DNA of 64,000 nt from Hormiphora californensis (Eukaryota; Animalia; Ctenophora): assembly GCA_020137815.1 (NCBI GenBank), contig CM035359.1, forward strand, positions 6,510,001 through 6,574,000, given 5' to 3'. Made by a program: the position numbers and the translations under genes. Position 1 is the first letter of the stretch. Each line of letters starts with the position of its first letter. Shown one piece after another: positions 37,555 through 64,000 of the stretch. The notes under the pieces were generated by a model, which had not been told where the DNA came from, made no database searches, and saw nothing but the letters and a program-made list of their open reading frames with translations.

Positions 37555-37957
37555 GGGCGCCGTTACGATCTGGGTGTTTAGAGGCCTGTTTACAGGTGCG
37601 CGCTGCCAAAAAAGTTGATTCACTAAAATGGCTCTAACCGCCAAACCACTCAACCGTTTTGACTGATTCAAAGTTTATCTGGTAGGGAATGTCAAGGCCT
37701 AACCCCAACCCAAACCCCAACCCTAACCCTAACCCTACTTTAGCCCTAACCCTATATAGTCCATTTTTTTTCAACTGTTCACCCCCCAAAGTCGTGCGCG
37801 GAATTGTTTTGCGCGTTTATCACATGTTAACGTGTAGCGCGCACAGCGTAAATTAAAATATCGCACGCGCACGAGTTGAGGGGTGAACAGTTGAATAAAA
37901 ATGGACTTTAAAACCGTTTGTCAGCACTCCCAAAACACCCAGATTTTAACGCTGGCC
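37555..37957 (+). mobile_element. MITE family A copy with nested family B MITE
   Basis: 9-bp TSD CGTCGTGAC at 37546-37554 and 37958-37966. Internal CCCTAA repeats. Confidence 0.88.
37755..37910. mobile_element. MITE family B-related element nested in family A
   Basis: TIR AGTCCATTTTTTTTCAACTGTTCACCCC / GGGGTGAACAGTTGAATAAAAATGGACT. Absent from the copy at 1-128. Shares the internal CACATGTTAACGTG motif with 33348-33491. Confidence 0.88.
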
Positions 37958-38254
37958 CGTCGTGACGTGCGCGTGCATGAATTGCCATTTGGAAAGAGTG
38001 CGCGGCTCTATTTATGCAGCGTTTTAGCAAATTCTTTAGACGCGACGCTCAATTCAGACGAGTGTGCAGCGCATAATTCAAAATTTTCATTTGCATTTTT
38101 AAAACGCGTTTTTTTAAATATGGGCCTGGGTGTTTTGAGAGAGATTTAAAAATTGAAAAGCGCTGCCTTATCCCGGGGGCCAGCAACGTTTGCCAAATTT
38201 AAAAAAATCTTTTTCATTAATTTTGGGGGTCGAGACAGGTTTAGGCTGCCCTTT

Positions 38255-38297
38255 AGTTTCAAACTTTTCAACACTACTTTAAACAAATTAATTTGAG
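38255..38297 (+). other. Spliced-leader (SL) exon sequence, 43 nt, at the 5' end of a retroelement
   Basis: AGTTTCAAACTTTTCAACACTACTTTAAACAAATTAATTTGAG matches, from memory, the pleurobrachiid ctenophore SL. Followed by CAG rather than a GT donor. Confidence 0.85.
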
Positions 38298-38352
38298 CAG
38301 GAAGATGAATCCGATGTAACAGCCCCGAAGGGCAGAAAACAAAACGTTGATA

Positions 38353-39309
38353 ATGTCGGAAGCGAAGTACGAGGGCGATAACCCTATGATAAAACGATTA
38401 GAAGAGACGGTGGATGACTTTGTTTCTGAAGTTTACCTGTTGAATTCGGACAACACGACGAGCATCACACCAGATGAGTTTACTCAATGTTATAGATCGA
38501 TTCAAGCTGCACCCGATTCAATGTTAACCAACGACAGCTTAGCTTCGCCTAGCAAGCACTGGGGTTCGTACTTTAGACACTGTCTCAAGGACCGAACTAC
38601 GAGTGAAATAATCGAGGCTACTTCGCGTATTTTTCTCTCCAGTATGAAACTTGCCCGAGCAACAATGAACAATTTTGAAACGGTTATCAGTGTGGAAAAC
38701 CTCGAGAAACAGCTGCGTGAATGTAAAGAAGAACTTGACCGCCATCGGGTTAACGTAATCGAGCTTCAGCAAACGGTCATCAACCACCAGAAGCAACAAC
38801 TCAGTACAGTGACAGCATCGGTGCAGAAGGTGAAAGCCTACTCTACTGTGCTAGCACAGAATTGTGCTGCAACCTCCCCCAAAGTGGGAAAACCACTACC
38901 AGTGAATCATCCTGCTCCCGTCCAACAGCCCGGAAGAGAGAAGAACCTGGTTGTGTTTGGTCTCCCAGAAACAACAGATAGAGTAGCTAAAACTACTTTA
39001 GACGAACTTTTTGAGGAATTAAATGAGAAACCGAAAGTGACTACGATGAAACGCATCGGCGAAAGAAATGAGAAGCGCCCTAGACCGCTCTTAGTATCCC
39101 TGGAGAAGAGAGCGACTCTCCTCGCACTCCTCAGACAGGCACGAAACCTCAAAGACTCCAAACAGTTTTCGGCTGTTTATCTCTCTCCGGATCTTACGCC
39201 CTCTGAACTGAAAGAGCAAAAAGCTCTAAGGTCCACTTTGAAGCGGATACGATCAGAAGATCCTGACGGCTGCTACTTCATCCGTAATAATCTTATCCAA
39301 GTGGGATAG
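38353..39309 (+). CDS. LINE ORF1-like protein (coiled coil + RRM-type C-terminal region of CR1/L2-group elements), 318 aa
   Basis: Motifs REKNLVVFGLPE, RIG..RPRPLLVSL and VYLSPDLTPSE, preceded by a heptad-rich coiled coil. Intact and intronless. Confidence 0.85.
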   Translation: MSEAKYEGDNPMIKRLEETVDDFVSEVYLLNSDNTTSITPDEFTQCYRSIQAAPDSMLTNDSLASPSKHWGSYFRHCLKDRTTSEIIEATSRIFLSSMKLARATMNNFETVISVENLEKQLRECKEELDRHRVNVIELQQTVINHQKQQLSTVTASVQKVKAYSTVLAQNCAATSPKVGKPLPVNHPAPVQQPGREKNLVVFGLPETTDRVAKTTLDELFEELNEKPKVTTMKRIGERNEKRPRPLLVSLEKRATLLALLRQARNLKDSKQFSAVYLSPDLTPSELKEQKALRSTLKRIRSEDPDGCYFIRNNLIQVG

Positions 39310-40599
39310 TTCCCCACTAACTCACCGTTATCAGAGAACTGTGCTAGGAGCAGGCAGTCTACTGCAGTCCCTTTCAAATTAAGGAAAACGAGTTGTCTGT
39401 ATACAAACTGTGTCAGTGCGGGATATAAACTGTTACTATTATTATTATTATTATTTAGGGATTTTTTAGGGTTTTCGGTTAATGCTATCAATTATCTATC
39501 AGATACCGTTTAGTTTACTCAAATTGGCTAATGGCTATATGGTTCCGTTGCTATAGCCATTTTAGGAAGTGTGTGTGTGTGTGTGTGTGTGGCCGTAAAG
39601 CGTTGGCTATCGCCTATCAATACGATCACCGTAAATTATTTCCACTAGAAAGTAGTATATTAAATGCATAAATTACATTAAAAAAAGTCGGTATATGTGC
39701 TCTCTTTTTGGAAGAATGCCCCCTTAAAACCTGTTAGAGGCACCTAGATTCCAATCGCACCCTGTAATAGCTGTGTAAAGGCTTAGGGACCCCTTTTGTA
39801 CAGCAGATTAAAAGTTCCCTAAGTTGCTGCTAAGCTTGCGAACTTGATTACAGTTCTTCCTCTTTCAGTCTTGCCTCACCGCACTAAGAGGAAACAGGGC
39901 AAACCAGGTCACTGATGTTTGATCTCATTTGAACTTCAGTGGTTGTCATGTTGAATACATTTCAATATATATTATAAAGTTTGAATATTTAACTTGCAAA
40001 AACATTAAGGGCCGTCCGCCGTTTCCTGAGTCCTGACAGCTAGGCATGAATCCTGAAGCCTGAAATCCCAGATTTCACAAAACTTTGTGTCGTTTGTAAT
40101 GTAGGTCTAATCATCATAAAGCTAATTCCATAGCACTGATTGTATTAATTATAATATTTTCCAAATCTGATCAGTATATGGCCCGTGATAAAATCAAGAG
40201 GTGGACGGAATTATAAAGAGGACTGATGATGCGGTCATTCCGCTTACCTGATACCCATCCCATTGCAATCACATTGTAAGTATTAATTGATAATACTAGC
40301 CTAGAACTTTTAGTAAGATAATTTATCGTCAAGCAAATACAGTCATAAAATAACTGTTTTAGAAACTAAAATATTGCCAACTAAACAGTATGTACGCTCA
40401 ATGTCATTTACATTTCGAATTATTATCAGGTTACTGGTCTGCCTTCTTATTACCTCTTCCGAATCTAGTAAGTTAATTCAATTTCTTGATGTTATTGATG
40501 GTACAATGCAACAGTAGTTCGAGGCCAATAAGCCAATCGTCATAACTAAAATGAATAGTGAATACGATCAAGATGTCATCTTTCAGGTCCCAGTAAGTT

Positions 40600-43500
40600 C
40601 GCCTTTTCCAAACAACCCACCAAAAACCGTGCCCCGACACGGGAAACCACCGAAAACCCCAAATCTGCGACTGGGGGAAAAACTGGTACCCACACAACCA
40701 AGGTACACCCTTTAAAAGCGGGCTTTAGTTTTTCCCTCCCGGAAGAACAAACCCCAGGGGATCAACCCACGGATAAAAAAAGGGACTCTTAAAAAATATG
40801 GGAGGGTCCCCTATGGGCGTGGTTCGTTTTTTTCCCAAATTTGTAAAGCACGGGCGGGGGGAGGAGTCTATTTTAAAGTGACTTTCCCTACGTTATTTTA
40901 AAATTTTCCCGGGCAACAAGAAAGGGACCCTTTTGGGCTTTAAATTTCCCGAATTGAGGGTTTTTTCTTTGGGGTTTTTTCCCAACCCTATTATTTGCAG
41001 CTAAAAAAGGTTTTAGTGGTTTTTTCCCAAACGACGACACATTTTCACTTAAATCTAAATATTTTTTTAAAAAAACGATGCCTGGGTTTTCACGCTCAAT
41101 TTGAAAACACAGACGGGGGGTTTTGATCCAAAGACCCCCAATCCCAGGGGTTTCTGTTACAGTGAAAGTGGTATAAAGGCGGTGGGGAAAGGGGAAACAA
41201 TAAATTAACATTTTTTTGGATAAAAAAAGGGGGAAAGGGGAAACGCTGGAAACAAATTTGGGTCAAAAAAATTTCAGTTACCCAAAATTTTCCCGGATTT
41301 TGAACATATAGTCTTGTTATATTCAACATAAAAACAGCAGATACTGGAACATATACCTGTAAAGCAGTTAAAAACGCTGATGGCTCCTTTTTATTTTGGA
41401 ACTGTCCCCATCAGTGTGTTGGAAAAATTTTAATTAAAATGCCTGGAAATTTAAAAATCAAAAACTTCATTGGCTGCTGGGTATACTTGTTCAAGCTCAA
41501 ACTCTGGGGGACATAAAGACGAAAAACCCTTTTTTTGGGGGAAAACCTTTCTTTTTACCTGCGGGGGGGTTTTTAAACCAGCGGGCCCCATTTATTTCCC
41601 AAATTTCGATCATTTCAAGTGGCTTTGGGGAAAGGATCAAAACACTACCCCTTTTTTTTTGACGGAGAATCAGTGGGGACCTTTCATTTCAAGTTTATAA
41701 CCTCCAGTTTTGAATAACAAAAGCGAATGTTGGGACATTTTAAAAATATCTAAAAAAGGAGCAGTGCCCCAAAAACCCACAGGTACTTTTAAAGAAAGGG
41801 GGTGCGTTTTTTGGATGGGGGGAAAAGATCAAAAAATTGGGGGTTTTACCCAAAAGGAAACAAAGTTTTTGATTTTTAGCAAAATTTTTTTTTTAAAAAC
41901 TCGTTAAATTTCAGCTGCTATTTTAAAGTTCCCTTCCAACACGTTTTTTAAACCCTTTCCCTTTTCTTATTCTGGGGGGGAAATTGACGGGTTCGAAGCA
42001 GCAGATCTCTTTTAGCCGTACGGGAAGGGGAAATCCGGAGGGACTTTAGAAAAATGGGAATATCCCCCAAAAGGGTGTATAAAATTTTAAAACACTCCAC
42101 CTTATACCGCATCTAATAGTGGTGCTTACCAATGTGCTATTACTAACAATGGGGATAACGTGTTCTTGACACAACATACAACTGAAGTTCTTATTGTTGG
42201 TAGGTAACTTTACTGTCTGCTCGTCATTGTATGGAAAATTATAGGTATCTTCACTCCAATAGCTCAGCTAAAATTTCTCCTTTCCAGAAAGCCCGACAGC
42301 TGCTCTGACTGCTTCTCCTACAACATACCGCACTGGTGATGCTGCCACCCTAACTTGTACCAAAAACGGGTTTCAACCCAATTTCATGGGTCCAAAAAAA
42401 GACGGGGACGGAGATCACTCTTCCCAAACTACTGAAGTCACTCAAGGGTTTTAAAAGGGCCCTATTTATTGGCCATTCTCTTTTTCGGACCCGGGGAAAA
42501 AAACACGTGCAGTGTTTTCAATTGAGGGGTAAAAAACTGAAAAGGGGGACGCAAAAAACCAAAACAAAAACCATTGACTCCCCTTGGAGTTTTTAATTTT
42601 TTGGTGAAAAAAAATTGAGCCAATAAATAGTAAAAAAACACATAAAAATTCCCGAGGTCTTTTAATTGTTTTGGTAACAAATTTTTCAGCCCAAGGGTTT
42701 CTAAAACCAACGCTCATTTAGGGCCTCCTTTTCCCCCTTCCAAAGGGCTCAGAAAACTATAACATGTGGGGTTGGGGGGGCAAACCCTGAACCTTCTCAA
42801 ACTTTTTTTAATCAAAGGGACAAATAGCAGTTTTTAAATTTTTTTCCCGGGGGATGTTCTGGGACTAATACCAAGACTTGCAACCATGTGATTACTACGT
42901 CCATAAAACCATGGGGAAAACTTACAATGTTTGGAAGCAATACTTTTTTGGAGGGTGTAGCAAAACAGACCCAAAAAACTGTTGAAAATCAATGTTGGTC
43001 GTTTTTAAAAAATAAGGTGTTTCTTAAAAAGCCCCCTTTCATTTTACTTTTAAACAAAATCTATTTTTTATTGGTCATTCCCAAACATCTTTTAGTTGGG
43101 GATGAGGAAGTTTCCATGGTGATTAAAAACGGCGCTGACGAGACTCTCACCGGTTCAAAAATTGAAATATCAAAAGGATCAACTTTGAAAATTACTTGCA
43201 TTGTAGAGGGCCAATTCCTTTAAACCGGGACCCAATTTCTCTGAAAAAAAAGGTGGAAACAGCAGGGGCCCGGGAACGACATTTTTCTGATAGGGAATTT
43301 TTCAAAGGCCCTTGGAGGTGTCAATTGGCAATTTGGAATTATGGAATTCGGGTTTTTTGACAAAATTTATTTTACGGGGCCCGTTTCCCTGAAACTCTTT
43401 GAACCATTGGTTTTTTGGGAAATAATAATATTCTGAGTATTTATTTAATAGGGGAAAAAACTTCATTTAGGAATACTAAAACTTTTGTAATTTATTCCCA

Positions 43501-46500
43501 GGTAAATCCCAAATGGAAAGGGACAAAGAACCCCGGTAAAAAACTGCGGGTCCTTCTGTTCTCAAATAGGGGCATAATGTCGGGGGTTAAAATGTCACTT
43601 TGGGTTAGTACAGAGTCCCCAAACCCCCTTGACCCCAAATTTTTTGTTTTTCCCCGCATAGCCAGGGGGAGGTAAGAAAAAAGAAATTTCCCAGTAGAAG
43701 ACCTATTATATTCATCAATTTTCCAAATTTTTTTCCCAAAACGTCATAATGGCAACCGCATTTATTGGATTTTTTAAAACCTCCTTTCCACAGGTGACCG
43801 ACCCTAGGGAAATTAATTTTTTAGAAAAAACCCGGGGAAAGATTTCATTAAAAATTTCCAAAATGAAACAAACTCCTTTTGTACAGAGGACAATGATTAT
43901 CAGCTTACTTGTACCCAAAACCCCATCAAAAAAGTTTTTGGGAAGTCCATTAAAAACCCCCGAATTTTACAATTTGGGAAATGAGTTTTTTTAAAAATAA
44001 AACCCTTTAAAATTTTGGGGTTTCCCGTTAAATTGGGGGCTTGACTTTTTTCTAGGGAAAACGGGCAAAAACAAGATTACACGGTTTTCGGGGAAGAATC
44101 AGAAAAGCCAAATTTTATGGAAAAAAAAGGCACCAAGGGCCCCTCCAAACCCTGGGGAAGTTGAGGTTTCCCAAGGGGGGGTTTTTAAATGTCCCCTGGA
44201 AAAACCCAAAGAGGTAAAAGGGGCTGGTATCATCAAGTCGGCTTGTCGTGATTTAACGTCCTCGTAAAATATTAAAGTTTTAACCTCTTTATGAAAAAAT
44301 GTGAAGAAATCAATAGGCCCAGAATTTTTAACCTTTCATGTTGATGGTGGTGGGTGCCCCCCTATCGTGTTACCCTCGATAGACCCAATTCACAGGAAAA
44401 AATTTTTGGGGGACAAGAAGATGGGTAGGGGGGTTTTTAAAATTAAACCCTTTTCATAAAAAAAGGCCAAATGAACTTCAGGTGGGTTTTAAAAACCCTA
44501 ATGTTCCCCTTGGGAGCTCCCTTAAAATTTAATTTGACTTGTTTGGGAAAAGGTTAAATCGTGTCCCAATGGACTCAAGGGGAAATCCCTTCCCCCTTAA
44601 CAAAGTGGACTATGCAGATAATTTGGGCAGAAAAAACTTAAAAAACTTTGGGCTTTTCCGATAAATTCAGGCTAACCCCCATTTTTCCCCCCCAGGAACT
44701 TCCCCCCGTACAGGGTTTCAACCGGGGCTAGCTGATTGGGGGTCCCCAAAAAAACAGACCCATTTCATTAGAATCAAACCATCACAGAAAATGTTTAAGG
44801 GGACTCCCGACAGCCCCCACCTACTGTAAAAAAGTTGGTGGGAAATGGAAGCAACTTTTGGGGATCTGTTTCCCGGGTTTCAAAGTTTTAGCTGAGGGGG
44901 GGACGAACTCCCCATTACATGGTATTGACCTTTTTTAAAAATGCTCAACTTTTAAAAGTAAAAAAATAAACACGTTTTTGGGAAAACGAAAAAAGTCATT
45001 TTCTTTGTTAACCCCCGGGGGTTGAATTTAAAAAGAACCCCCCCTGGTTATTTACAAAACGGGTGGGGCACAAGCAAACCAAAACCTGGCTGACAAAGTG
45101 ATTGCAAAAAAATTAACCCAAATTTTAAATCTAACATTTCCAAATTACTCTATTGGTTTTTTTTTGAAAAACGGGAAAATTAGGAAATGTGAATCGAAAA
45201 ACAAAGCATTCAATAAAACTGTTGCAATTTTAGTCAACAAAAAAACCGTAGTTGGGTTTTAAGTGGGTGATATTTTGTCAGAAATTTTTTTTATTTTCCC
45301 TTTTCGGATAAGTAGTTGATAGATTGAAAAGTAATTGTAACATCAAAATTAATCGTTTTTTCCCGCTTTTATTTCAAACGTAAAAATTGGGAAAAAACCC
45401 GAAAAAACCAAAAAGTAGATTTTTATGGATCAGTGGCCCTCAAAATTTTTTTTTGAAATGGGGGAAAATTCCCCGAAATCAGTTAAAGTGGCTAACAGCG
45501 CCCGCACAATCCCGGACGGGCTACTAAAAGCGGGATTTTTACGGGTGACAAAGGCTTTAATGTGTGTAACTTTTTTAAATGCCAAAAAGTGGACTCGATG
45601 GCATTTTACCTTTTCAGCCCAAGAATGATTTGGGGGCCAACCAGGGGGGGCTGAAATTAAAAAAAAACGGGTTTTAAGTTTTTCAGGGGGGTGATGGTTT
45701 TGAAAAAGAATTGCAATTTAAACGAAAGGGAAGGGCAATTGTATTTTTAGGTTTTTTCCAATTTCTCATGTGACAAAGTTTTTCTATGTTTTTTTCCTCT
45801 CGCGGCCGCGCTCGCGCCCAAAAAAAACAACATGCAGATACACCCTAAATTTATTTTTTGGCAGCCCCAAAACCACCTTCTTTTTGGTGACCCTGCACAG
45901 TAAAAGACGGGAAAAGACCTCACTATAACATGTAAAGCAGAGGGTGGGGAAGAACCCCATTCCATGAAAATGAATACCCAAGTACTGGGGAGTAATTGTA
46001 TGAAAGTTTAAACTCGGGCCCGCCGCCCTTTGATAAACAATTTAAAAAAATCAACTCCCTCTACGAGTTTTTGAATGGGACGAAATGGGTGGTAAGGATA
46101 TTTTTGGGCCCCGTTTGGGGGCACGGGGAGGAAGGGACACACCTCCTCGCGTCCCCCCGGTTTTCAAACCCCTGATGGTACTTTTCATTTTTAAAGGGGT
46201 ATAAAATTTGGGGATTGATGGGGGTAAATTTAACCACGTGTTCCCCAAATGACAATTGGTAAGTTTATTAAACGAATTAGGATTTCCAAACCTTCTAAAA
46301 AACCTCGAAAATTTTTACCCAAACCCCCCTAAATTTTGTCCAAATCCCCTGGTTTTCCCCTTTCTTCTCCCGAACTCGCATGTGACTTTCTAACCCCAAA
46401 TGTTAAATTTACTGTGGCATCTAAACCGATCATTGGAAAGGGGTAAGGTTGGATTTCCCGAATTCAAAGGGGGTTACAAAAATGTTATAAAAGGGGCCCA

Positions 46501-49500
46501 ACCCCATTTTAAAACGTTTCCCAAAAATAAAATTTTCAAGGTCTTTTTTATTTTCTCTAGAAGGGTTTAATGAAACCCCATTCATTTGAAGCTCGATCGG
46601 GATTTTCCCTACCTAAAATTATTTCCCTTTCCCCGATAAAAATGGAAGTACCCTAATGGCACAGAAGTGGATCACGACAGTATGGTTGTTTACAGAGCTA
46701 TTGATTCTTAACTTTGGAAAAAGCAGGGGAATTAACTTTGGGGCCAGGCCCCCTCTAAAAAACGCCCGAGGGGCTAATTTTAAATGTGTGGCTGACGGGG
46801 TTGAAAAGAGTGTTACAGTCACTAACCCCCAGGTTATTTTTGGGGAAATTTCCAACAAAAAATCTTTTATTCTTATTTTTTTTTATTCCCTAGATCTCGT
46901 TTTCCCGTTTTTCCCCAAAACTTTTTCCAAAACCCCTTTTTTTTTTTTTTTTTTTTAAGGAATGTGTTTTTGGGGGACTCCCCAAACTTTTTTTCCCCTC
47001 CGGAAAAAAAATCGTTGCCAAAAGGTGACCCCAACAAATGTGCCGTGTGAGCGGTTTTCCAGAACCGACAGTAGGGCCCTTTTCCCCTTTAATTTTGGGG
47101 AGAAACAAGGGGGCCTCTTAAAAATTTCTTTTAAAAATTTTTAAAAACCCAAAAATAATAAGGGAAACCAAAGGTTTATTTCTGTTTTGTGGGGAGAACA
47201 CGAAATTTTGAAATCAGGGTTTTTGTTTTAAGTGTAGGGTCAGTTCAAATTTTTTTTTTTAGGTTTCCCCAATAAACATTTGAACCCCCTCTGCAAAAAC
47301 CCGTGACGATACTGAAAACACGGGACTTCGTGGGGGCAGAGGGAAAAATGAAAGTTACGGGAACTAAGACCCGTTCCGAGTCGGGCCCCAATAAAAGAGG
47401 ACTTTACAGGGAGTTTCTTGGGGGGAATCCCCTTAACCCCGGATCGGGGGGAAGGGGTTTAAATTTTGCTGAACACACAGGCTATATAGTGCATCACACT
47501 AGCCAGCGTGGTATTAGAAGAAGAAGAAGTAAATTTTAGGGTTGGGGGTTAAAATGTTTTGTCCCCTTTTTGCTAAAAACAGAATAAAACCAGGGCAAAG
47601 GGGGGGGGGGTTTGGGGGGGGGGGGGGGGGGGGGCTTTTTCCCCAATCTCAAATCTCAGGGCTAACCAACCATTCCCTTCCATATTTTTTCCACCCCCTT
47701 TCCCCCCAACCCCACCTAACCCCACCTCACCCCCACCTAACCCAATCTCAGCACGTGCCAGGATTTTCGGTGGTAGTGTTTGGCGGGTTTTCTTGGTGGC
47801 ACATTTTCATTGTGATTATCCCCTTTTGTGGGGGTCAAGAGGCGGGGGCGCAAAATAACCACCACGCCAGAAAACGGGCTGCTTTCAGGTATGTAGAAAT
47901 GATATATTGAAACTTCGGTTATTTGGTGATTGTCGGCGTAGATTGGACGTTGCTTGGTTTATCTAGGATGGCAAACTCTGCTCAATTCTTGTAATTTTAT
48001 TTCCTTCTTTTTATCTCCTTTCCTCAGCTTCTTGTAGATATTTGCATTCGATGTTTACGGTTTTTTTCACAAATTCTATAATATTAGTTAATACAACATT
48101 TTCTGTATCCTAATAAACTCCCCCCTTTTAGAATTACAAATTATCCCTCCCTTTAAATTTCGGTTTCTTATGACCTTTTTTTTCCCCCCCCCCCCCCCTT
48201 CTCTCTTCTCCCCCCCCCCTTTTTTTTTTCCAAAAAAAAAAAAACTCTCTCTCCTTTCCCCCTCCCCTCTCTCCTCTCTCTCCCCCCTTTCCCCCTTTTC
48301 CCCCCCCATTTTCTAACTAACTTTGACCCCTCTGACCTCCCCAGGAACACGGCCTTCGTGAATTCTCCAACACCAGCCCCCAGGGTTTTGATTATTACAT
48401 GAAGATATGGGAGAGGGGGAGAAAAAGGGGGGGAGAGGGGGAACGAGAGGGGGGGGGGGGGGGGTGGGATTAATTAAAAGGGATAGGGGGAGGACCCCCC
48501 CCCCCCCCGGGGGGGTTTCTCTTCCTCGGGCCCCTCTCTCTCTTCCCCTTTTTTCCCCTCCTCGCCTCTTTAGGTGCTTGTCCCCAAAAGTTGTTCACTT
48601 GTTCAAATTACAACTGACAAAAATCCATCTCTCTTTAACAACACAATTGTCACGTTATGCTAAGGGGAAGGTTTGGGGCACCCCAAAACCTTTAAAAGGG
48701 GAAAAGGTTTAAAGAGTTGGCCCCAAAAAACCCGGATTTTCCACCCCCTGGTAAACCCGGGAAATTACCACTCCCGCACTTGACCAGTCACTTTTGCCCA
48801 TTTTGCCCCCAAACCCCCCCCCCCTCTCCCCGGGGGGGTTATCCCCCTTTTTCCCCCCCAAAAACCCCCCCCCCCCCCCAAAACTCACCCTACAAGAAAA
48901 GTCACCGTTCCCCAAAAGACCGGGGGCCTATTTTGGGGAGGTATGCACCAAAAACCACTATTCAAATCCGATAAAAAGGGGGGGAGTGGGGGACCAGAGG
49001 ATTTGGGGGTTTTTTTCCCAGATCCAACGCGTTGCAACGAGAATCAATTTAGAGGTTCAAACCTACCGGCTACCTGCAATCGAGTGTTTTTCAGCTTTAC
49101 ATGATACTGGATTATTGAAGAATGGTTGCTGTTCTCTGGCTAATTTTGTCTAGCTGATTGATAATAACAATTCCCAAAGTGATTTATAAAAATTTGCCCC
49201 AGTAAATTTCGTGACATTCATTAACCTTGTTTTTTCCTTGGGCGGAAAAACAAGAAAAAAAAGGGGTGCGTTGGGGTTTTGGGAAACCAAAGCTCCGTTT
49301 AAATACAATATGGGTTCGGAAATGTTTTGTGAATATTTTCAACCCAGTTCTCACACACATACATTTTTCAGAAAATATCGGTCCCAAAAAAAATTTTTGA
49401 CCAATGGGAACAGGCCGCTAAAACCAGTGATTGGCGGATTTAAATGGGAAAATCGTGATTTTTACCTCCAGTTTTCTCTGAAATATTTTCTATCCCCCGT

Positions 49501-50480
49501 CCTACCCCAGCATCTTTTGGCCTACACCCTCCGGGGGTTTTTGAGTTCTCCAAAACCATCCCTTTCTCCTACCCAATTCCCCAAAGCTAGAACCAGTTAG
49601 TAACATTCCCTCCCCCCGTTCACATGAAACCCAAAAACACTACTCATGATGACACACCCAAAACAGTCCCAAAAGAGTCCCCCATTGTGGACTTGAGGGC
49701 CACCACCTAATTTTTCGGCACCGCCGTGCCTGGCGGAGAGGTAGGTTTATTTGGGGTGTTGTCAGTTTTGGAACAATATAATTGTTATTTATTTTGAATA
49801 AATGGAATTAGGAAGTTGGTCAAGTAGTTTCTAAACTTGTCTAGCTTCCACAACCCGCTAAATTGTATCGCTCAGTAAAGGGCTAAGTAGACAATTCAAG
49901 CTACACTTCTCTCTCAGGACCCTGTTTATGCTAAGGTAAAAAACCCGGGGGGGCGTCTCTCCTGGGCCCGTCATGTTGAAGGGACAACCCCCCCCCCCCT
50001 TCCCCCCATTTACGGGACCATGCAGGTGCGTGTAGTTGGGGGAGAGAGGGCGGAGAGAGAGAGGGGGAAAAAAAGAAGGGGGGGAGAAGAAAAGGGGGAA
50101 GAGAGAGGGAAAAAGGGTGGCCAGGGGGAGAGTGGGGGGAAAAGGGGGGGTTTGTGGTGTTTGGACAAAGCCTCAAGAACCGTGTTAACTTAGCAGCGAA
50201 AACCAACCCCACAACGGAGTCTATTTAAACTCAAACAGGTTCGGTCCCCGGGGGGCCATTTTTCCCCCCCAAAAAACCCCCGGGAAAGGAAAAAAAAGGG
50301 CCCCCCCCCCCCCCAAAGAGCTCCCTCGCCGCCCCCCCCCCCCTCCCTCTCTCCCCCTTTTTCCCCCCTCTCTCTCCTCTCTCTCCCCCTTCTCTTCTCC
50401 CTTCCCCTTTTCTTTTTCTTCTCCTTCTCTCTCTCTTCTCTTTTCTCCTCTCTCTTTCTCTCTTCTTATCTCCCCAATTT
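40600..50480. other. Low-accuracy assembly segment (homopolymer-inflated consensus)
   Basis: Abrupt excess of A/T/G/C runs, fragmented reading frames, and GA microsatellites collapsed into G/A runs. Confidence 0.85.
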
Positions 50481-51959
50481 TTCTACGGCTCTTCTATCTC
50501 TCTCCACACCAGAATTCCAATAACGTGATATTGAAAGGACATGGCTCCCCCAATTTCACAACTTGACAGTACACGTGCCATCACACTCTGCACGTATTAG
50601 GCAATTGCAGTATTAATATTAGGGCGATGTACACGTGGTTCTAAGCTGGGATTTTTTGAAACTGTCGCACCCCTTTTCACGCGCGGCGTCGTATTTGCGC
50701 CTGACAGCCCCCACTTGCTCTCACTTTTCGGCAAAAAACGCATATCATCGGAAAGAGCATAATTTTGTGAGTCCGTAAAACTTTGGTTTGACGAAATTGG
50801 TCAAGAAACAAAGGCGTGAGAGCGAAAACAAGTTTCCGACGTGCAAATAAAAACTCGCGCACCACCCAGGGGGGCGACAGTTTCAAAAAATCCGACTTTA
50901 AGCTAGGATTTTCATTTTAATATTTCGGGGCGTGGATGGGAAATTCATACAATCTTCAAGGTGAGACTGGGTGCTAAAACTTTTCCGACTTTGGTTCCAT
51001 CTTCTCGTGAGAGGAACTCCTATAAATACCTTTTTCAAGAAATTTCTTGAGTGAAATGAACTGCAATATGATGAATTGCACAGTAGCTACTATTATTGTA
51101 GAAATGTGTTTCCAATGTGCTAATGTATTGTTTATGTTTACAAACATTTACACAAGATAACACATCCTACTCAGTTCACCATCATACATGCTCAAAGTTC
51201 TTTCTTTCCATCTCATTCATCACTCTATCTTTCTATCTTTTCTCTGTAACTCTACCTAAGCGATTTCAGTTACATGCTCAGTATAGTAAACTGTCAGTTG
51301 AGTAAAAAGAGCGCACCGATTTGCTTCCTCGCGTTCAAGACATACTCACTATCATCTTTCTCACGTTTCTCAACTTTCTACGGAAATGAATAATCATAAA
51401 AAGGATTGAAAAAGGGCTGGCTAATAATCAATATTATTAACTTCAAGCATAGAACCCAAACAGTATAGAAATGGGGGGATGGGGGGTGAGGAGATGTGTC
51501 ATCTTACCACACTACCATGACGATATTATCTCAATTGGCTATTTTCCTGATCCCTTTCAGAACCCTGGCGGTGAGGAGGATCCAGTATACAGCACAGTTG
51601 ATCCTCGATTAAAACCCGCGGTAAGTGTCCCCTGAATATTACCAGTGTTTCCCCACCTTTGGCAATTGTCCCTTACCATAAATAAATAATAGGGTAGAGA
51701 CATGATAGGCGGGAGACCCACTGAAGTTGGGCGTGCTCGTTCAAATCTCAACCTCGCGACACACACGAATTTTATCATGAAAACGGATTATGCTTTGCAC
51801 CCAAAAGTCAAAAGCAAGGGGTGATCTAGACCCCTAGCCCAACTTATCTCCCGCCCGTAACTATATAACATTTTCAAACAGAGAACGGTAACACCAGATC
51901 CCGATGACGACATACCTCCAGAGATCCCAATTTATGGGTCCATGGCACAACACATGCAG
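41300..51959 (+). CDS. Immunoglobulin-superfamily / FN3 type-I membrane receptor (approximate extent; sequence corrupted)
   Basis: Surviving motifs: DTGTYTCKAV (~41340), NSGAYQCAITN (~42115), GDAATLTC (~42335), GSTLKITCIVEG (~43177), an FN3-like GG.PITWY (~44895) and a hydrophobic segment (~47761-47830). Clean cytoplasmic exons 51561-51620 (NPGGEEDPVYSTVDPRLKPA) and ~51882-51959 (PDDDIPPEIPIYGS). Confidence 0.6.
50648..50900. mobile_element. MITE family B-related element
   Basis: TIR GGATTTTTTGAAACTGTCGC / GCGACAGTTTCAAAAAATCCGACTTTA. Confidence 0.8.
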
Positions 51960-53680
51960 GTAATCATCTAAAAAACTCACACACATACCCCTAACGAGCC
52001 ACGCCGGGACTTTGAAACCCGAAACCCAAAAGTTTGTTTTCCACTCCGAACTTTACGTAACGCGCGGAGTAGAGCGTGTGAGGGAAGTTCTCTCGCAACA
52101 CTCCGTGGAAGGTGCGCGCGCACGTTGGAGTGGGAGGATTGAGTCGATTGATTCACCGCCCTCACCGGTCACCCACTGCAATTCAGGGGCCAGAATGGAA
52201 TGTGGGATAGGGTATACGAATAGTCCATTTGCTCATCAACCACGAAACGAGCAGACATATACACCAAACCCAACGACCTGGAATCAGTTTTTAAAACTAA
52301 ACTAACAAATAAACCCAATGTCCCGCGGCCGGTCCGTAATTGAGCCGTATTACAACTCCATACAGTGCTGACTATGAGTCAAATACCTGTAATGAAAATC
52401 CAGTAAGACGCGCCCCAGGTAAAGTGCCGCCAAAAACGTGGTGTCACTCGAAAAGCCGTCGCGACCTGACCCGAAATACTGGAACTTTGGAAAAGGAATC
52501 AAATTATTACAAAGGAAACCTGAATTAGTGCAGATCATCGTCACTCGTTTGTGGAACGCTATTTAGCGCCGATTGGTAAGTTGGGTACTCTGACGTATCT
52601 TGTTATTTCATACGATTTTCCACAAACATCCAAGTTGATATTTTACACGGTAGATTTCAACACTTTCCTGCATCCATATCCATGCCAAATTTCAATTACA
52701 GTTCCACACATAATCTACGCAACAGTGAATTTATTCCAAAAGCTGCCATCGACACATCCACGATGTCGAAAGAGACTAGTAAAAGAATCAAATTGTTATA
52801 GAGACACACTATGTATAGCATTTTTAATTTCGCGAATTATTAGACCTAGTCAGAGTACTCGAGTATTTAGGTCACGAGACTAAAACATCAGGACCAGTAT
52901 TTCTGATTCGTCGGTTCTATTTTTCAATCTTTATCATGTCATTGACCAAATGGCAAATTATATTACACTTTTCACACCCTACTAATTAGGGCTGGTTTAA
53001 CAGTGTAAACAGTTCATTCACACTGACAATACATGCACAGATTTCCTATTGATTTGTTTGATATATGATTGAATGTAAATAGATTTAATTTCAGTTTTTA
53101 TAGGTAGCATTTTTGTTTACATTTTCCCACATCTTTAAAAAGGGCCAGTTTTGGCAGAATATGCAATTGGAATGGTTATAATTTATATACAAGTGTAATA
53201 AATTTAAAATGCTAAAACTCGTCGGTATTTCTATATATGGTAGAATAATGTCAGTGGTTCATATTACGATGGAACTTTAACTCAGGACTATGTATTTAAA
53301 TATCAAAACTGTGGGAAAATAAGTTCCGATTAGCTGCTAAGGTTTTCGCCCGGTCTTATATATCATGTATTTAACTCCAGCTAGATTATCTGTCCGTCTA
53401 TGTTAGTTTCTACAACTTTTTTAATAACTATTGGTCAACAGGGGATCAACATTAACAATATAGCAACCCAAATATAGAGCACTACTAGGAGAAAAAAAAC
53501 CGTGGTGTGATCAGCACACATCGTAGTTAGCTACCACACAACAAAGTTCCTAGTAAATAGCCTCCTATCATGATAATATCAGCAGCTCAGTCTCTCAATC
53601 ACTCTGACCATCTCTCTCTCTCTCTCTCTCTCTCCAGATCTATCAACATTAGAACAATATTAGAACTAATCCGCTCTGCT

Positions 53681-60796
<7,116 letters not shown>

Positions 60797-60797
60797 C

Positions 60798-60822
60798 CTG
60801 AAAAGAAAAAAATCGTCAGTTG
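60798..60822 (-). promoter_or_regulatory. 3' splice acceptor one base upstream of the kleisin ATG (probable SL trans-splice site)
   Basis: Minus strand reads CTGACGA-T-rich tract-CTTTTCAG|G ATG. Confidence 0.6.
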
Positions 60823-60904
60823 AAAAAATTGGGAGGCTCGATTGCCTCCGCGGGTGAGAGATTAGCAGGTGGTGGATGGTTTAACTTCAACAACGGACAA
60901 ATCA

Positions 60905-60942
60905 CAAACTTTTCAACACTACTTTAAACAAATTAATTTGAG
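60905..60942 (+). other. Spliced-leader exon sequence (38 nt, 5'-truncated) at the head of a LINE
   Basis: CAAACTTTTCAACACTACTTTAAACAAATTAATTTGAG, identical to 38260-38297. Confidence 0.85.
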
Positions 60943-61113
60943 GTGATGGCATTTAGCAAATAAAGTTACGGGGGAGGTGACGAACCCGTAACACAAGCGA
61001 ACCTATCTGACGAGAGACCCGATATCGATAGTCTCTGATAAGTCGACATCGATAGTCGTGAAGAAACACCCAGAGTGATAACCGACATCGATAGTCGTGT
61101 GGTGAATCCGATA

Positions 61114-62640
61114 ATGATGTCATCGCAAATTCCGAAGAGTTCGAAAAACCTTCAAGAATACAAGAGGAATGAGAAGCTAACAAGTGTCTTCGTCATATCT
61201 AAACTGGTAACAAACGCGGCTGCGACGCACCCTCTTGCTAAAAAAGCATTTGAAGCCTACGAACTTGGCGCCACCGCGGTAACCAACATCACCAACTTCA
61301 AAAAACTTGATGTGTCTGAGATTGAGAGCGCCGCTGAGTACCTTGGGTTCAAAGTAAGAAATACAACCCCTGACAACAAAAGGCTGTATAAAAACCGAAC
61401 CACTCTCGCTCACCGCGTTATCCTGAAAATTGAGAGCTTATTTCCTGCGTTCTGTCGGGAATGCGACTCGACCTACCAACCGCAACTAAATGACTCTCCC
61501 CCTCTCATCTGCTGGACCTGCTACAAACCCTCCCATAACTGCTCCAAACTCATAGAAAGTGCAGCAGCTATCGAGACTGTGAAGGATATTTCGGGATTCA
61601 AATGGATGTGTTTTGCGTGTACCGACAAGACCAGCCTGTCCCTGAAAAAAATGATAACTTTGGCCAATGTTGATACAGGAGAGAAGGCTTCAAACCCTCC
61701 CAAAGGTGCGACCCAAGACACGACCCAGGACACGGAGCACCAGAAGGAAGCTAAAAACACCCTCGACGAGGAAATGAAAGATGATGGGGAATGGGAGATA
61801 GACATATCGTCCAGCACTCTATATCACTCTCAGATCGAAGGAGACGGTGAAGAGGTTGAGAAAGACGAAGAGGTTGAGAAAGACGATGAACCAAAGAGGA
61901 AGGAAATCCAGGGAAAGTGCAAGTACTACAAAAAAGGGAAATGCCGGCACGGAGAAAAAGGTGACATAATTGTTGAAGGAAAAACCTGCCCTTATCTTCA
62001 TGATGGAAAACCCACCGCTGAACCGACTGATCAGGAAAATTGTAAATTCTTCGTCCAGTTCGGAAGATGCAGACATGGCACTAACGGAAAGAGGAGAATT
62101 AGAGGTAAGATCTGTCTCTACAAACACCCGAAAATCTGCAACAAGTTTAGAAGGGGTGGGTATGGAAAAAATGGTTGCAATGCAGGCTCAAAATGCGAGA
62201 ACCTTCACCCGAAATTATGCAGAGGATCTACCTCGCCTGATAAAACATGCCCAAACCCTACTGGTTGCAAATTCTTCCACATCTCTGGGACCCGCTTCAC
62301 TCCAAAAGTGCCACCGGGAGAAAATAAGCGAGAGGAAATTCAACATAACGCAACCAAAACTGGTTATACTGCTGGCAAAGCCCCGACATACGCAGATACT
62401 ACTTCCTCTGCAGCGCAGGAAAACCAGGACTCGCAGCAGGATTTTTACAAAACCCTGGTCAAGGAAATGAGACAAGGTTTCCTGGACCAGGCCCAGAGTA
62501 TCCAACTTCTCGCCAGATCCCTGTCAATGGTAGGACTTCAAGGCTCACCTGGACCCGGGATAAACATGGACCCACTAAAGCTACCACTGGGAATGGGCAT
62601 GACACAAGGGTTACTCCACCCTTCTCAAAGATCTTTCTAA
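61114..62640 (+). CDS. LINE ORF1 protein with a PHD-like finger and tandem CCCH zinc fingers, ~508 aa
   Basis: FCRECDS..ICWTCYKPSHNC..WMCFAC, then four C-x-C-x-C-x3-H-type fingers (CKYYKKGKCRHG..CPYLH, CKFFVQFGRCRHG..CLYKH, CNKF..C..CENLH, CRGS..C..CKFFH). Confidence 0.85.
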   Translation: MMSSQIPKSSKNLQEYKRNEKLTSVFVISKLVTNAAATHPLAKKAFEAYELGATAVTNITNFKKLDVSEIESAAEYLGFKVRNTTPDNKRLYKNRTTLAHRVILKIESLFPAFCRECDSTYQPQLNDSPPLICWTCYKPSHNCSKLIESAAAIETVKDISGFKWMCFACTDKTSLSLKKMITLANVDTGEKASNPPKGATQDTTQDTEHQKEAKNTLDEEMKDDGEWEIDISSSTLYHSQIEGDGEEVEKDEEVEKDDEPKRKEIQGKCKYYKKGKCRHGEKGDIIVEGKTCPYLHDGKPTAEPTDQENCKFFVQFGRCRHGTNGKRRIRGKICLYKHPKICNKFRRGGYGKNGCNAGSKCENLHPKLCRGSTSPDKTCPNPTGCKFFHISGTRFTPKVPPGENKREEIQHNATKTGYTAGKAPTYADTTSSAAQENQDSQQDFYKTLVKEMRQGFLDQAQSIQLLARSLSMVGLQGSPGPGINMDPLKLPLGMGMTQGLLHPSQRSF

Positions 62641-64000
62641 TCAATTGTAGATCAATTTCCCCAGCTGCAGGCGGTGAAACAAAATGGAAGCTACCTTACA
62701 TCCGTGAGATGTTTATGTCCCCTTCCCCAGGGGAACCACCCACCGTCGCAGTTGGAATAACAGAAACTTGGCTGAAATCGTAATTCCAAAGCTCAAAATT
62801 CTGTCCTGGGGTTTTAACTTTGTCAGATCAATAGGAAAATAAAGTGGGTGGAGGTTGCTTCTTTATTTAAAAAAGTTGACATTCAAAAGTCATCATGGAT
62901 GACAAACCAAAAGAGTGTACGTGGCATAGCGGAAAGAAAATCTATTATGGCCCGCCTTTTCCGACCCCCCATGCAGCACCCACTCCTTTTCTGATGCGTG
63001 AATCATTCAAAAGGGAAATTGACTATCACTGAAGGAAAAAGCAAGTACCCCCGGGTCACTTTATGGGTGATTTTTAACCTCCCTAACTGGACTGGGAAAA
63101 GAGCGATTTCTGAATCAACTGGGAAAAGGGTTTAAGGACCTTACCCCCAAAAAATTGGACCTGATAAACGAAAATTTTTTTTTCCCGATGACGATAATCA
63201 ACCAGGGGAGAAAAATTCTTGATATTTTGTTAAAACCCAAAACTCCGGGTATTTCACTCGAGTGATAACCTCCGAAACCAAATATGGACCACAAAATTGT
63301 AGAATGTGAATTTTCTACACCGTACAACCAAAAATGCAAGTGAAGAAGAAACAGACCCTTTTTTTTGACGATACGGATTCCCCCGATCTGTTACTTTTCC
63401 CAATGAAAACCAGGGTTTTTGATATTGACGGGACAAACCGAAAAGAGTTTATTGAAGCAGGAGAACAACTGGGAAAAAATTTAAAATGGTGTATTCAGGT
63501 ATACTGGGAAATTTCAAGGAAAACCCACTCTAAGAAAAAATTTTGTAAGGCGACCGAGACAAAGATCACGGAGAAGTTCAGAAGAAGAGCAAGAAAAATT
63601 AGAAAACGCCTACAGAATGATGACGAGGAGATGAGCTTTAGACAGAGGGTTTTTACGGTTAGGAGCTTGTCAATTGAGGAAAAAATGAAAAAAAACATGA
63701 TAGAAAAATCAAGCCAACGGGGAAGCTAAAGCAGTGGGTGCTATCAAGGAAATCCTCGCACTTCTTTTCTTTCGCTAAAAAGCTATCAAAAACAAAACAC
63801 CATAGCACCTCTCGGGAAAAAAAGGTTTAACACAACGCGGAGTGGTGAAAAAGGGACAAATACTACAAAAAACTTCACGAGTTTTTTTGAACCCGAAAAT
63901 GCGAAATGGAACCAGCCAGGCATAATAAACCCTGATACGAGCTCTACCTTGAGGACTTTTATTCACACCCGAAAGTGAAAAAAGCACTTGGCGAAATAAA
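62620..64000 (+). pseudogene. LINE ORF2 (AP endonuclease and linker), frame-broken; the breaks are probably consensus errors
   Basis: VAVGITETWLK (~62745-62780), GGG (~62845), MGDF.N (~63063), ILDILL (~63215) and DHKIV (~63287). Sequence beyond ~62780 is homopolymer-corrupted. Confidence 0.7.

Follow-up and report, generated by a model that had tools for sequence, protein, structure and literature searches.

[quoted passage not shown]

Three units, each headed by a copy of a host spliced leader (SL), were found in the window, i.e., the whole stretch of 64,000 nt of Hormiphora californensis DNA analyzed here (Table 1). The initial annotation had reported an identical 38-mer at positions 38260–38297 and 60905–60942, and this was confirmed: exactly two exact matches occur in the window, both on the plus strand, where none is expected by chance (0 of 100 shuffles). 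The identity suggested for it, a pleurobrachiid leader, also proved correct, the 38-mer being an exact match to the published spliced leader of H. californensis (SL-A), which was present on 56% of the Iso-Seq reads described with the published 110-Mb genome. Similarity between the two copies stops at TTTGAG on the 3' side, as had been stated, and their upstream flanks differ. The lengths of 43 and 38 nt given for the two copies hold as well. The first copy, starting at position 38255 with an A followed by GTTTC, would comprise the entire SL exon, provided that the A of CA/GTTTC is the first base of the SL RNA gene. The second copy consists of the 3' 38 nt of SL-A. Both leader-headed elements described initially were recovered, but their count was incomplete, as a third head, formed by the second host leader (SL-B), was located by motif search. 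The sole AG in SL-A or SL-B is represented by the final two bases.

Table 1. Leader copies and leader-headed units in the window.
Feature	Positions	Strand	Remarks
Element 1	38255–39455	+	Leader and 1.2-kb ORF1-only retroposon (family A)
SL-A, full-length copy, 43 nt (A + 42), head of element 1	38255–38297	+	Exact match to published leader
Element 1 body	38298–39455	+	5' UTR, ORF, 3' UTR
Element 1 5' UTR	38298–38352	+	Tiny uORF and GCCC..GGGC hairpin
Element 1 ORF, 318 aa	38353–39309	+	L1-ORF1p-like protein only
Element 1 (ATT)n tail, end of 3' UTR	39437–39455	+	
SL-B (second host leader), full-length copy, 43 nt, head of element 3	58267–58309	+	Motif search
Element 3, 99-bp high-copy unit without ORF, directly 3' of SL-B	58310–58408	+	
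SL-A, 3' 38 nt, head of element 2	60905–60942	+	Upstream flank unrelated to SL gene promoter
Element 2 body, decayed 5' part of an APE + RT LINE	60943–64000, on to ~64433 (L031:3634), beyond the window end	+	
Element 2 5' UTR	60943–61113	+	
Element 2 ORF1 with CCCH-like zinc finger	61114–62640	+	
Element 2 ORF2 remnants, three frames	from about 62250	+	

Both SL-A copies had been placed at the 5' boundary of a non-LTR element. The boundaries were verified, but element 1 is an ORF1-only retroposon of 1.2 kb and not an autonomous LINE. Forty scored copies of its family A (of 551 first-look candidates) showed identities of 87–99%, a common 3' end position, and an (ATT)n tail of varying length, eight of the 40 being 5'-truncated. 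The encoded protein had no sequence match in Pfam, NCBIfam, or PDB and was named by fold comparison only. In its structural model, a helix (residues 83–174) is followed by a beta-alpha-beta domain; confidence in the model is moderate (mean pLDDT of 65, rising to 79–91 for the greater part of the coiled coil and C-terminal domains). The best Foldseek match was the human LINE-1 ORF1p trimer (2ykp/2yko, E ~3e-6), and the top 11 matches were all human L1 ORF1p entries (E-values between 3e-6 and 2e-4) aligned over ~195 columns (trimer chains), indicating an L1-type ORF1p fold composed of coiled coil, RRM, and CTD. Since element 1 encodes ORF1 only, the reverse transcriptase must come from an autonomous LINE. 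RNA contigs from wild samples span the element from within the leader to the tail (38284–39424), and RNA from its flanks was little or none (~250 bp upstream and nothing downstream to position 40000). A contiguous unfilled site was not found for element 1, the flanks of which represent a mosaic of small repeats. One contig of a second individual (X5) joining positions 37944 and 39501 was considered as an empty site and rejected, as the two joined positions lie in high-copy repeats and differ from the element's ends.

Element 2 shares 88% identity over 3.5 kb with a copy on contig 7. The ORF2 of this relative (1137 aa) features the domains Exo_endo_phos_2 (1.9e-11) and RVT_1 (1e-27), and its best PDB sequence matches represent human L1 ORF2p (2e-11). 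Judged by these domains of its relative, element 2 is a non-LTR (LINE) retrotransposon with an APE endonuclease. In the window, its ORF1 matches that of the relative to residue 395, the frameshifted ORF2 extends to about residue 800, and the element lacks its 3' end. The ORF1 products of elements 1 and 2 are unrelated, as had been claimed (BLASTP E = 2.4; separate protein clusters). The 99-bp unit of element 3 yielded 626 first-look candidates; the 40 copies scored cover positions 1 to ~99 at 87–100% identity, and at least eight of them lie directly behind an SL-B match. At this short length, it may represent a mini retroposon or the 5' piece of a larger element.

Family A copies were picked by body sequence and hence are unbiased for the leader. 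All 32 of the 5'-complete copies carry one (22 SL-A and 10 SL-B), as opposed to none of the eight 5'-truncated copies. On a tree of the 32 bodies, the leader type changes seven times, at least three of these changes being forced by strongly supported branches; shuffled leader labels gave 8.7 changes on average, with 53 of 500 shuffles as low as seven. SL-A and SL-B alternate even among copies 98–99% identical, including star-like young bursts. In family A, the leader is supplied fresh in each cycle and not inherited together with the body.

Nevertheless, a leader could have been captured once or a few times and then inherited within the 5' UTR, the elements relying on an internal promoter and dispensing with trans-splicing in each cycle. 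Internal promoters are found in many LINEs, and work on Ascaris reportedly showed that the SL exon can act as an intragenic promoter element. Furthermore, two loci (L084 and L096) have the same mutated leader in common, indicating that leader inheritance does occur, at least via duplication at the DNA level. However, single capture fits poorly with two leader types scattered over nearly identical copies like shuffled labels, with the identical perfect leader present on families whose bodies are between 12% different and unalignable, and with junctions that shift in AG-bounded steps. On balance, this explanation is improbable.

At the junction, family A features GAG/CAGGAAG in 27 copies, GAG/GAAG in four, and GAG/ATG in one. 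Element 2 features GAG/GTGATGG in the window and GAG/ATAG-GTGATGG in the contig 7 copy, and another pair of leader-headed groups differs at the junction by exactly TTTCAG. All heads end in GAG, and the body-side variants (steps of CAG, ATAG, and TTTCAG) all follow an AG. An exon-exact leader end joined to an AG acceptor on the body side is the mark of retro-copies of SL-trans-spliced RNA. As to the outer end, 30 unbiased heads were compared with the exon's G: 22 extend to it or stop one base short, comprising 16 heads of 42 nt, eight of which also include the preceding A, and six of 41 nt. The same leader is joined to many different downstream sequences in RNA contigs of two metatranscriptomes (loose ends behind positions 38296–38307).

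Alternatively, leader addition could take place during cDNA synthesis, the reverse transcriptase switching to an SL RNA or another leader-bearing mRNA once it has arrived at the 5' end of the element RNA, comparable to the U6/L1 chimeras. LINE enzymes are well known to switch templates at 5' ends, and inverted heads arranged head-to-head at several loci illustrate that odd 5'-end events happen. Yet on the leader side the join always coincides with the exact exon–intron boundary and never includes SL RNA intron sequence, and on the body side it is fixed at two or three AG-preceded positions per family instead of being spread along the body. Such template switching thus seems highly improbable as the source of the leaders.

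A genome-wide search (110.69 Mb, 45 contigs) resulted in 508 exact matches to a 29-mer of SL-A and 145 to a 31-mer of SL-B, the reversed-pattern controls yielding 0 in both cases. As opposed to these 653 matches, true SL RNA genes number only ~13, namely 12 for SL-A and one for SL-B (G000:C13:2741213). The genes are recognizable by their layout: the exon end GAG is followed by the donor GTAAGCTGA (GT in all, GTAAG in 13 of 13) and the Sm-like site CTTTTGG, and those examined are arranged as divergent pairs with at least 120 bp of upstream sequence in common (comparison of two gene copies, the divergent pair in locus L100). None of the first 30 SL-A matches in the genome represents an SL gene. 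They fall into ~22 sequence groups, in most of which a long ORF begins 10–70 nt past the junction. Clustering of the first-ORF proteins of these matches, together with those of a GT-junction sample, yielded three large clusters and two small ones, the scanned representatives of which include an ORF with PHD and RT domains and another combining a 2OG-oxygenase domain with a weak lipase match. In several ORF-less groups, the motif CUGAUGA...GAAAC was noted 3' of the leader.

The leader copies could accordingly be regarded as SL RNA genes or pseudogenes that the elements adjoin or have entered, as CRE, SLACS, and NeSL do. Sites of this kind, 718 in number, were counted as leader loci in the published genome paper, and a GT happens to follow the leader of element 2. 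However, the head at 38255, which aligns base for base with the SL RNA gene exon of locus L100, continues with CAGGAAG and not with the GTAAG donor, and the donor, the Sm-like site, and the shared upstream sequence are all absent at 38255, 58267, and 60905, where CAGGAAG, GATGCTT, or GTGATGG comes next, followed by an ORF or a repeat body. The promoter motif GGAGGCCGGTCCAG was present at L099 and L100 but neither in the window nor at any other locus searched, and the upstream flanks of all heads examined are mutually unrelated. In the contig 7 relative of element 2, moreover, ATAG separates the leader from GTGATGG. There is consequently next to no chance that the SL-gene explanation applies: instead of being leader genes, all three copies in the window head retro-copies. 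The majority of the ~700 "leader loci" published for this ctenophore are likewise to be reinterpreted as retro-copy heads. An assembly artefact or cDNA contamination has an equally negligible probability: although the short assembled contigs (DNA and RNA) end inside the ~700-copy leader, so that none extends at the window loci from the flank through the leader into the body, more than 650 exact matches are spread across contigs with a distinct flank in every case examined, element copies show tails, 5' truncations, and age classes, and a second sample, taken in a different study (X5), has half of the window's words in its DNA contigs.

The explanation proposed at the outset, namely SL trans-splicing of the element RNAs followed by reverse transcription almost to the cap, is supported by the alternating leaders, the AG junctions, and the leaderless truncated copies. 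Since all 5'-complete copies of family A are headed by a leader, truncated copies lack it, leader types are scattered, and junctions lie at AG, the element RNAs were very probably SL-trans-spliced and then reverse-transcribed in full length into the chromosome, leaving the leader at the 5' end of the copy. Element transcripts would first be matured by host SL trans-splicing, in which an AG acceptor where the 5' UTR begins receives the 42–43-nt leader exon of either host SL RNA. In the manner of non-LTR elements, this mature leader-bearing RNA would then be reverse-transcribed at the chromosomal target, element 1 presumably borrowing the reverse transcriptase of an autonomous LINE. Synthesis would usually continue up to nucleotide 1 or 2 of the RNA, and each new copy in the genome would therefore open with the leader. 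We infer target-primed reverse transcription as the integration route. Target-site duplications bracketing leader and tail were not detectable above control: when the 30 nt upstream of the leader were compared with the sequence past the tail in 30 family A copies, flank matches of at least 6 nt were found in 4 of 30 versus 5% of mismatched controls. A source copy, promoter, or unspliced precursor of the elements was not identified.

As a more tentative idea, which we consider possible but somewhat doubtful, promoterless elements may rebuild their own 5' ends. Wherever a copy lies inside a transcribed region, the host polymerase would run on through it, the AG that ends the embedded leader would act as the trans-splice acceptor, and a fresh capped leader of either type would replace the old one, restoring exactly the same junction for the next round. 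Such a self-restoring junction would account for the fact that no leaderless full-length copy was found. If this holds true, host SL trans-splicing would be obligatory in the life cycle of LINE, ORF1-only, PHD + RT, and ORF-less groups, and the same may apply to Mnemiopsis, for which 491 genomic leader copies were reported. Whether a promoterless mobile element can live by recycling the acceptor site of its copied leader thereby becomes a testable question. Quite apart from this idea, it is very probably host SL trans-splicing that gives the retrotransposition templates of many retroelement groups their 5' end. Copies that were reverse-transcribed in full, to within a base of the cap, carry the leader as a built-in tag, and the two leaders provide a natural label for independent transposition events.

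Only partial precedents were found in print, and a report of leader-headed retroelements in ctenophores was not found in the literature searched. Slamovits and Keeling are said to have described, in 2008, dinoflagellate retrogenes tagged by DinoSL relicts. There, as here, reverse transcription of the mRNA includes its trans-spliced leader, which persists in the genome as the 5' end of the retro-copy and therefore marks retroposition. DinoSL-tagged retrogenes have since been reviewed (PMC6050394; PMC5585692). However, the dinoflagellate tags reside on host genes, whereas in H. californensis whole retrotransposon families are tagged, in family A on every 5'-complete copy and with two leaders alternating. 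Reuse of an AG within the leader often leaves the dinoflagellate relicts truncated and stacked; the leaders of H. californensis, in contrast, contain no AG upstream of their end. In parasitic flatworms, 597 candidate SL loci in mobile elements were discarded, and a single sentence of the paper proposes that they represent retrotransposons integrated after trans-splicing of their transcripts (PMC12582326, 2025). This by-product remark concerned partial leaders at LTR and LINE elements, without analysis of junctions, families, or phylogeny; the leaders described here are full-length, exon-exact, present on all complete copies, and renewed in each cycle. In Hydra, ~30% of the Iso-Seq reads from transposable elements carry the host leader, showing that these RNAs use host trans-splicing (PMC12220107, 2025). 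The Hydra evidence is confined to the RNA level, genomic copies having no reported leader, whereas here it is the genomic copies that carry it.

A physical linkage of non-LTR elements to leader sequences is also known for CRE1/CRE2, SLACS, and CZAR of trypanosomatids and NeSL-1 of nematodes. These elements enter the SL exon within SL RNA gene arrays, so that the promoter lies upstream and the exon is split. The contrast drawn with them by the initial annotation was correct: fixed-site insertion inside the leader exon of an SL RNA gene was not seen at the heads examined, and the elements of H. californensis begin with the whole exon and occupy hundreds of unrelated sites that lack the gene promoter. 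U6/L1 and other chimeras similarly feature small host RNA sequences fused 5' of a LINE-derived copy, but there the whole snRNA is joined at variable body positions, as opposed to the exon-exact join at AG acceptors observed here. Finally, self-cleaving ribozymes, i.e., the HDV-like ribozymes processing the 5' end of co-transcribed R2 and L1Tc (PMC3185411) and the hammerheads of Penelope-like elements, likewise yield a defined 5' end from a longer transcript without a reliable promoter. At gathering thresholds, Rfam gave no match in the window or at eight loci; at E-values up to 1, only spurious miRNA-like matches on palindromic heads were obtained for five of these loci, and no hammerhead was matched there. 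In the ribozyme systems, an RNA motif encoded by the element makes the cut and the end is uncapped, whereas here the host spliceosome would provide a capped leader. SL trans-splicing would thus represent a route to a defined, capped 5' end that is distinct from both internal promoters and self-cleaving ribozymes.

The 38-mer, the 3′ part of the host spliced leader SL-A, was found exactly twice in the window (38260–38297 and 60905–60942, both on the forward strand), and 0 of 100 shuffles matched. Identity between the two copies ceases at ...TTTGAG on the 3′ side, and their 5′ flanks are unrelated. The initial annotation had described this identical pair with its sharp boundary and had equated the sequence with the pleurobrachiid ctenophore SL exon; exact search and comparison of both flanks bore out the former, and the 38-mer equals the trans-spliced leader that the genome paper of Hormiphora californensis (110 Mb) describes. 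In that work, 56% of Iso-Seq reads bore the leader, and the 718 'leader sequences' counted in the genome were taken as leader loci (PMC8527503). Three leader-headed repeats reside in the window (see table). Only the first two had been noticed before, element 3, headed by a second leader (SL-B), having been overlooked; the leader lengths of 43 and 38 nt given for them were correct, but the 43-nt copy is complete and not 5′-truncated.

Leader-headed repeats within the window and their parts
Feature	Position	Strand	Description
Element 1	38255–39455	+	Complete 43-nt SL-A plus 1158-bp body
Element 1 5′ UTR			55 nt directly after the leader
Element 1 ORF	38353–39309	+	Intact, 318 codons
Element 1 3′ UTR			Ends in (ATT)n
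Element 2	60905 to beyond window end	+	Headed by the 3′ 38 nt of SL-A
Element 2 5′ UTR			171 nt after the leader
Element 2 ORF1	61114–62640	+	Weak CCCH zinc-finger match
Element 2 ORF2			Remnants only in the window copy
Element 3	58267–58408		Complete SL-B plus 99-bp unit without ORF

Element 1 features neither a second ORF nor a reverse transcriptase, and its protein had no sequence match in Pfam, NCBIfam or PDB, while eight homologues were identified in other leader-headed groups. In a protein model built on the alignment of homologues, a 90-residue helix precedes an RRM-like and a C-terminal domain, and the 11 best structural matches all belong to human LINE-1 ORF1p, as trimer or domains (E 3e-6 to 2e-4). 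Given this modelled L1-ORF1p-like fold and the missing reverse transcriptase, element 1 is a non-autonomous retroposon encoding only an ORF1p and dependent on another element's enzyme. Both leaders had been placed at the start of non-LTR elements, which holds for the retroelement 5′ boundary, but not for element 1 as an autonomous LINE. Element 1 and its genomic copies (family A; 40 scored copies, 551 first-look candidates) share the same 3′ end position in all scored copies, with (ATT)n tails of varying length, and eight scored copies are 5′-truncated at differing positions. Degenerate TTAGGG-like repeats often adjoin or contain family A copies (window 39456–39560 and 38230–38254; flanks of loci L033, L040, L048, L066 and L077), as does an adjoining ~100-bp repeat (…CGGTTAGGGCTA…TTTAGTTTACTCAAA) in the same flanks, and these surroundings may reflect a target preference. 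A 5′ UTR module, in which one or two ATGs with a closing stop precede a GCCC(C)-loop-GGGC hairpin and an AG, was observed at 38305–38335 and within 50 nt downstream of the leader in L001, L009, L011, L022, L025, L030 and L074. It lies 10–25 nt before the ORF1 start and is common to otherwise diverged groups of two ORF1 superfamilies; since the stem is invariant while the loops vary, covariation is not scorable.

The contig-7 copy of element 2 (L032; 88% identity over 3.5 kb) encodes an ORF2 of 1137 residues with endonuclease and reverse-transcriptase domains, for which human L1 ORF2p is nearest in PDB. Compared with L032, the window copy is colinear in ORF1 to residue 395, and its ORF2 is scattered over all three frames and ends near residue 800, the 3′ part therefore being missing. 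As initially annotated, the ORF1s of elements 1 and 2 are unrelated (E = 2.4) and fall into separate protein clusters of leader-headed elements. Four genomic sites (C4:5640276–5640396, C3:4216797–4216917, C2:3718660–3718780 and C8:6717892–6718012 of assembly G000) match the element 2 5′ UTR over its first 122 nt only (95–96%), at least one of the four adjoining a leader match; they may represent a derived family or a spliced variant with this 5′ UTR. In element 3, SL-B directly follows a (GA)n run. Its 99-bp unit yielded 626 first-look genomic candidates, of which the 40 scored match positions 1 to ~99 only, at least eight sitting directly 3′ of an SL-B match. At its end the unit has a pyrimidine-rich stretch followed by AG (…TTTTCTTTTATAATATAG), and several genomic matches have no exact leader match beside them.

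Searching the genome (110.69 Mb in 45 contigs, the window being C10:6510001–6574000) revealed 508 exact SL-A matches (29-mer). Leader matches preceding GT numbered 84, among them the divergent pair L099/L100 with a full exon, followed by GTAAGCTGAG and two stem-loops either side of a CCTTTTGG Sm-like site, and with an upstream region of at least 120 bp common to both copies. The pattern of leader end, GTAAG donor and CTTTTGG identified 12 SL-A genes, mostly in divergent pairs plus one contig-13 cluster. In the latter (C13:3181608–3195356), five leader genes, each having a donor and an Sm-like site, lie inside 14 kb (six SL-A+GT matches), with a spacing of partly ~750 bp; those on contigs C5, C9 and C11 are mostly divergent pairs 540–610 bp apart. 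Leader-gene upstream sequence ends ...CAGCA|GTTTC; transcription may start at that A, which would give a 43-nt exon, and the 5′ GAG published would then consist of AG preceded by an extra, cap-dependent G. SL-B, found through family A copies, shares its first 12 bases (GTTTCAAACTTT) and TTGAG end with SL-A and has 145 exact genomic matches; a single SL-B gene was identified, with a GTAAGCTGA donor and CTTTTGG. Therefore, only ~13 of the 653 exact matches (2%) are leader genes, and none was present among the first 30 SL-A matches (0/30). A share of ~97–98% of leader copies being heads of retro-copies held on re-testing.

These 30 matches form ~22 nucleotide groups, most beginning a long ORF 10–70 nt past the junction. 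First-ORF proteins from them and from a GT-junction sample fell into three larger clusters, two of which contain the window's ORF1s, and two small ones; a PHD plus reverse-transcriptase ORF, as well as one with a 2OG-oxygenase domain and a weak GDSL-lipase match, were detected in the cluster representatives scanned. One group without a long ORF (L020) is a 0.69-kb repeat family. Sixteen of the 30 heads, i.e., leader copies at the 5′ end, comprise 42 nt from the exon's G (8/16 also the preceding A) and six comprise 41 nt, indicating that reverse transcription usually extends to the RNA's first bases. In L084:1582–2973 and L096:1582–2973, a leader-headed ORF (at least 464 aa) encodes a 2OG-Fe(II) oxygenase (AlkB-like) domain with a weak GDSL-lipase match, and may represent either a retrogene or an atypical ORF1; both copies carry the same mutated or truncated leader, which was therefore inherited there. 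Head-to-head inverted leaders were observed in L013, L016, L021 and L029 (position ~1440–1560 of each) and in L040:300–2690, where two near-full-length family A copies face each other. Leader and body start form a palindrome joined at the leader 5′ end (in L016 the inversion is exact over 115 nt), which suggests that the cDNA 3′ end snapped back to prime the second strand; the first nine bases of the leader are nearly palindromic. In the ORF-less groups L004, L005, L013, L016, L021, L024, L027 and L029, CUGAUGA or a near variant right after the leader is followed by a short GC helix and GAAAC, resembling the hammerhead core that occurs in Penelope-like elements, although Rfam detected no hammerhead at E up to 1.

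Family A copies, chosen by body sequence alone, carried a leader in 32/32 5′-complete cases (22 SL-A, 10 SL-B) and in none of the 5′-truncated ones (8/8 without). On a maximum-likelihood tree of bodies only, with leader and tail left out, leader type required seven changes, at least three of which were forced by strongly supported branches; shuffled labels gave a mean of 8.7 changes, with 53/500 shuffles as low as seven. Young, star-like bursts with a divergence of 0–0.4% among members also contain both leaders. Taken together, these results indicate that the leader is drawn anew for each copy, as predicted by trans-splicing and not by inheritance. The leader side of the junctions is always the exact exon end, and on the body side GAG|CAGGAAG (27 copies), GAG|GAAG (4) and GAG|ATG (1) were found in family A, each alternative start following AG. 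The element 2 body starts GTGATGG in the window, ATAG preceding these bases in the contig-7 copy, and TTTCAG is the exact difference between two related leader-headed groups. Alternative AG acceptors characterize splicing. Had the leader come from template switching, body positions would be scattered and SL RNA intron carried along, neither of which was seen.

Trans-splicing followed by reverse transcription and integration is thus the best supported mechanism: the element pre-RNA would be trans-spliced to either host leader at an AG that opens its 5′ UTR, and the mature leader-bearing RNA would be integrated by way of reverse transcription up to its 5′ end. The analysis confirms the feature, and the retrotransposition through SL trans-spliced RNA proposed initially is supported by the exon-exact leader side, AG-bounded body starts, SL-A/SL-B alternation and the leader on every complete copy. 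Each complete family A copy begins with a leader, and in either leader AG occurs only as the final dinucleotide; read-through from outside could therefore allow re-splicing at this AG, which would restore the same junction.

Sequencing runs were examined as short assembled contigs. RNA contigs from two marine metatranscriptomes, one oligo-dT primed, covered element 1 from 38284, inside the leader, to 39424 in the tail, with one low bin in the ~250 bp upstream and none downstream to 40000. As a leader should, the leader bin was very deep in RNA and ran on into numerous unrelated sequences. One contig per RNA run had non-leader sequence upstream of a complete leader, which could stem from a read-through precursor or from carried-over DNA. 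Element 1 is also contained in DNA contigs, some of them belonging to a second sample of a different study, but these break within the leader, so that no junction was bridged. Flank matches of the kind that target-site duplications would give were no commoner in family A (4/30 copies) than in mismatched controls (5%), no empty site for element 1 could be rebuilt, and no source copy with upstream outron or promoter was seen.

The retro-copy explanation may also fit the 491 genomic leader-motif copies of Mnemiopsis leidyi given in the H. californensis genome paper (PMC8527503). A literature search found no published reports of leader-headed retroelements in ctenophores. The phenomenon is not unprecedented, its nearest precedents being a one-sentence suggestion on flatworms, where 597 loci with partial leaders at LTR/LINE elements had been discarded (PMC12582326), leader-bearing TE Iso-Seq reads in Hydra (PMC12220107) and DinoSL-relict retrogenes in dinoflagellates (PMC6050394, PMC5585692). 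By contrast, CRE, SLACS and NeSL elements enter the leader genes themselves, an arrangement that, as previously recognized, differs from that of the H. californensis heads.
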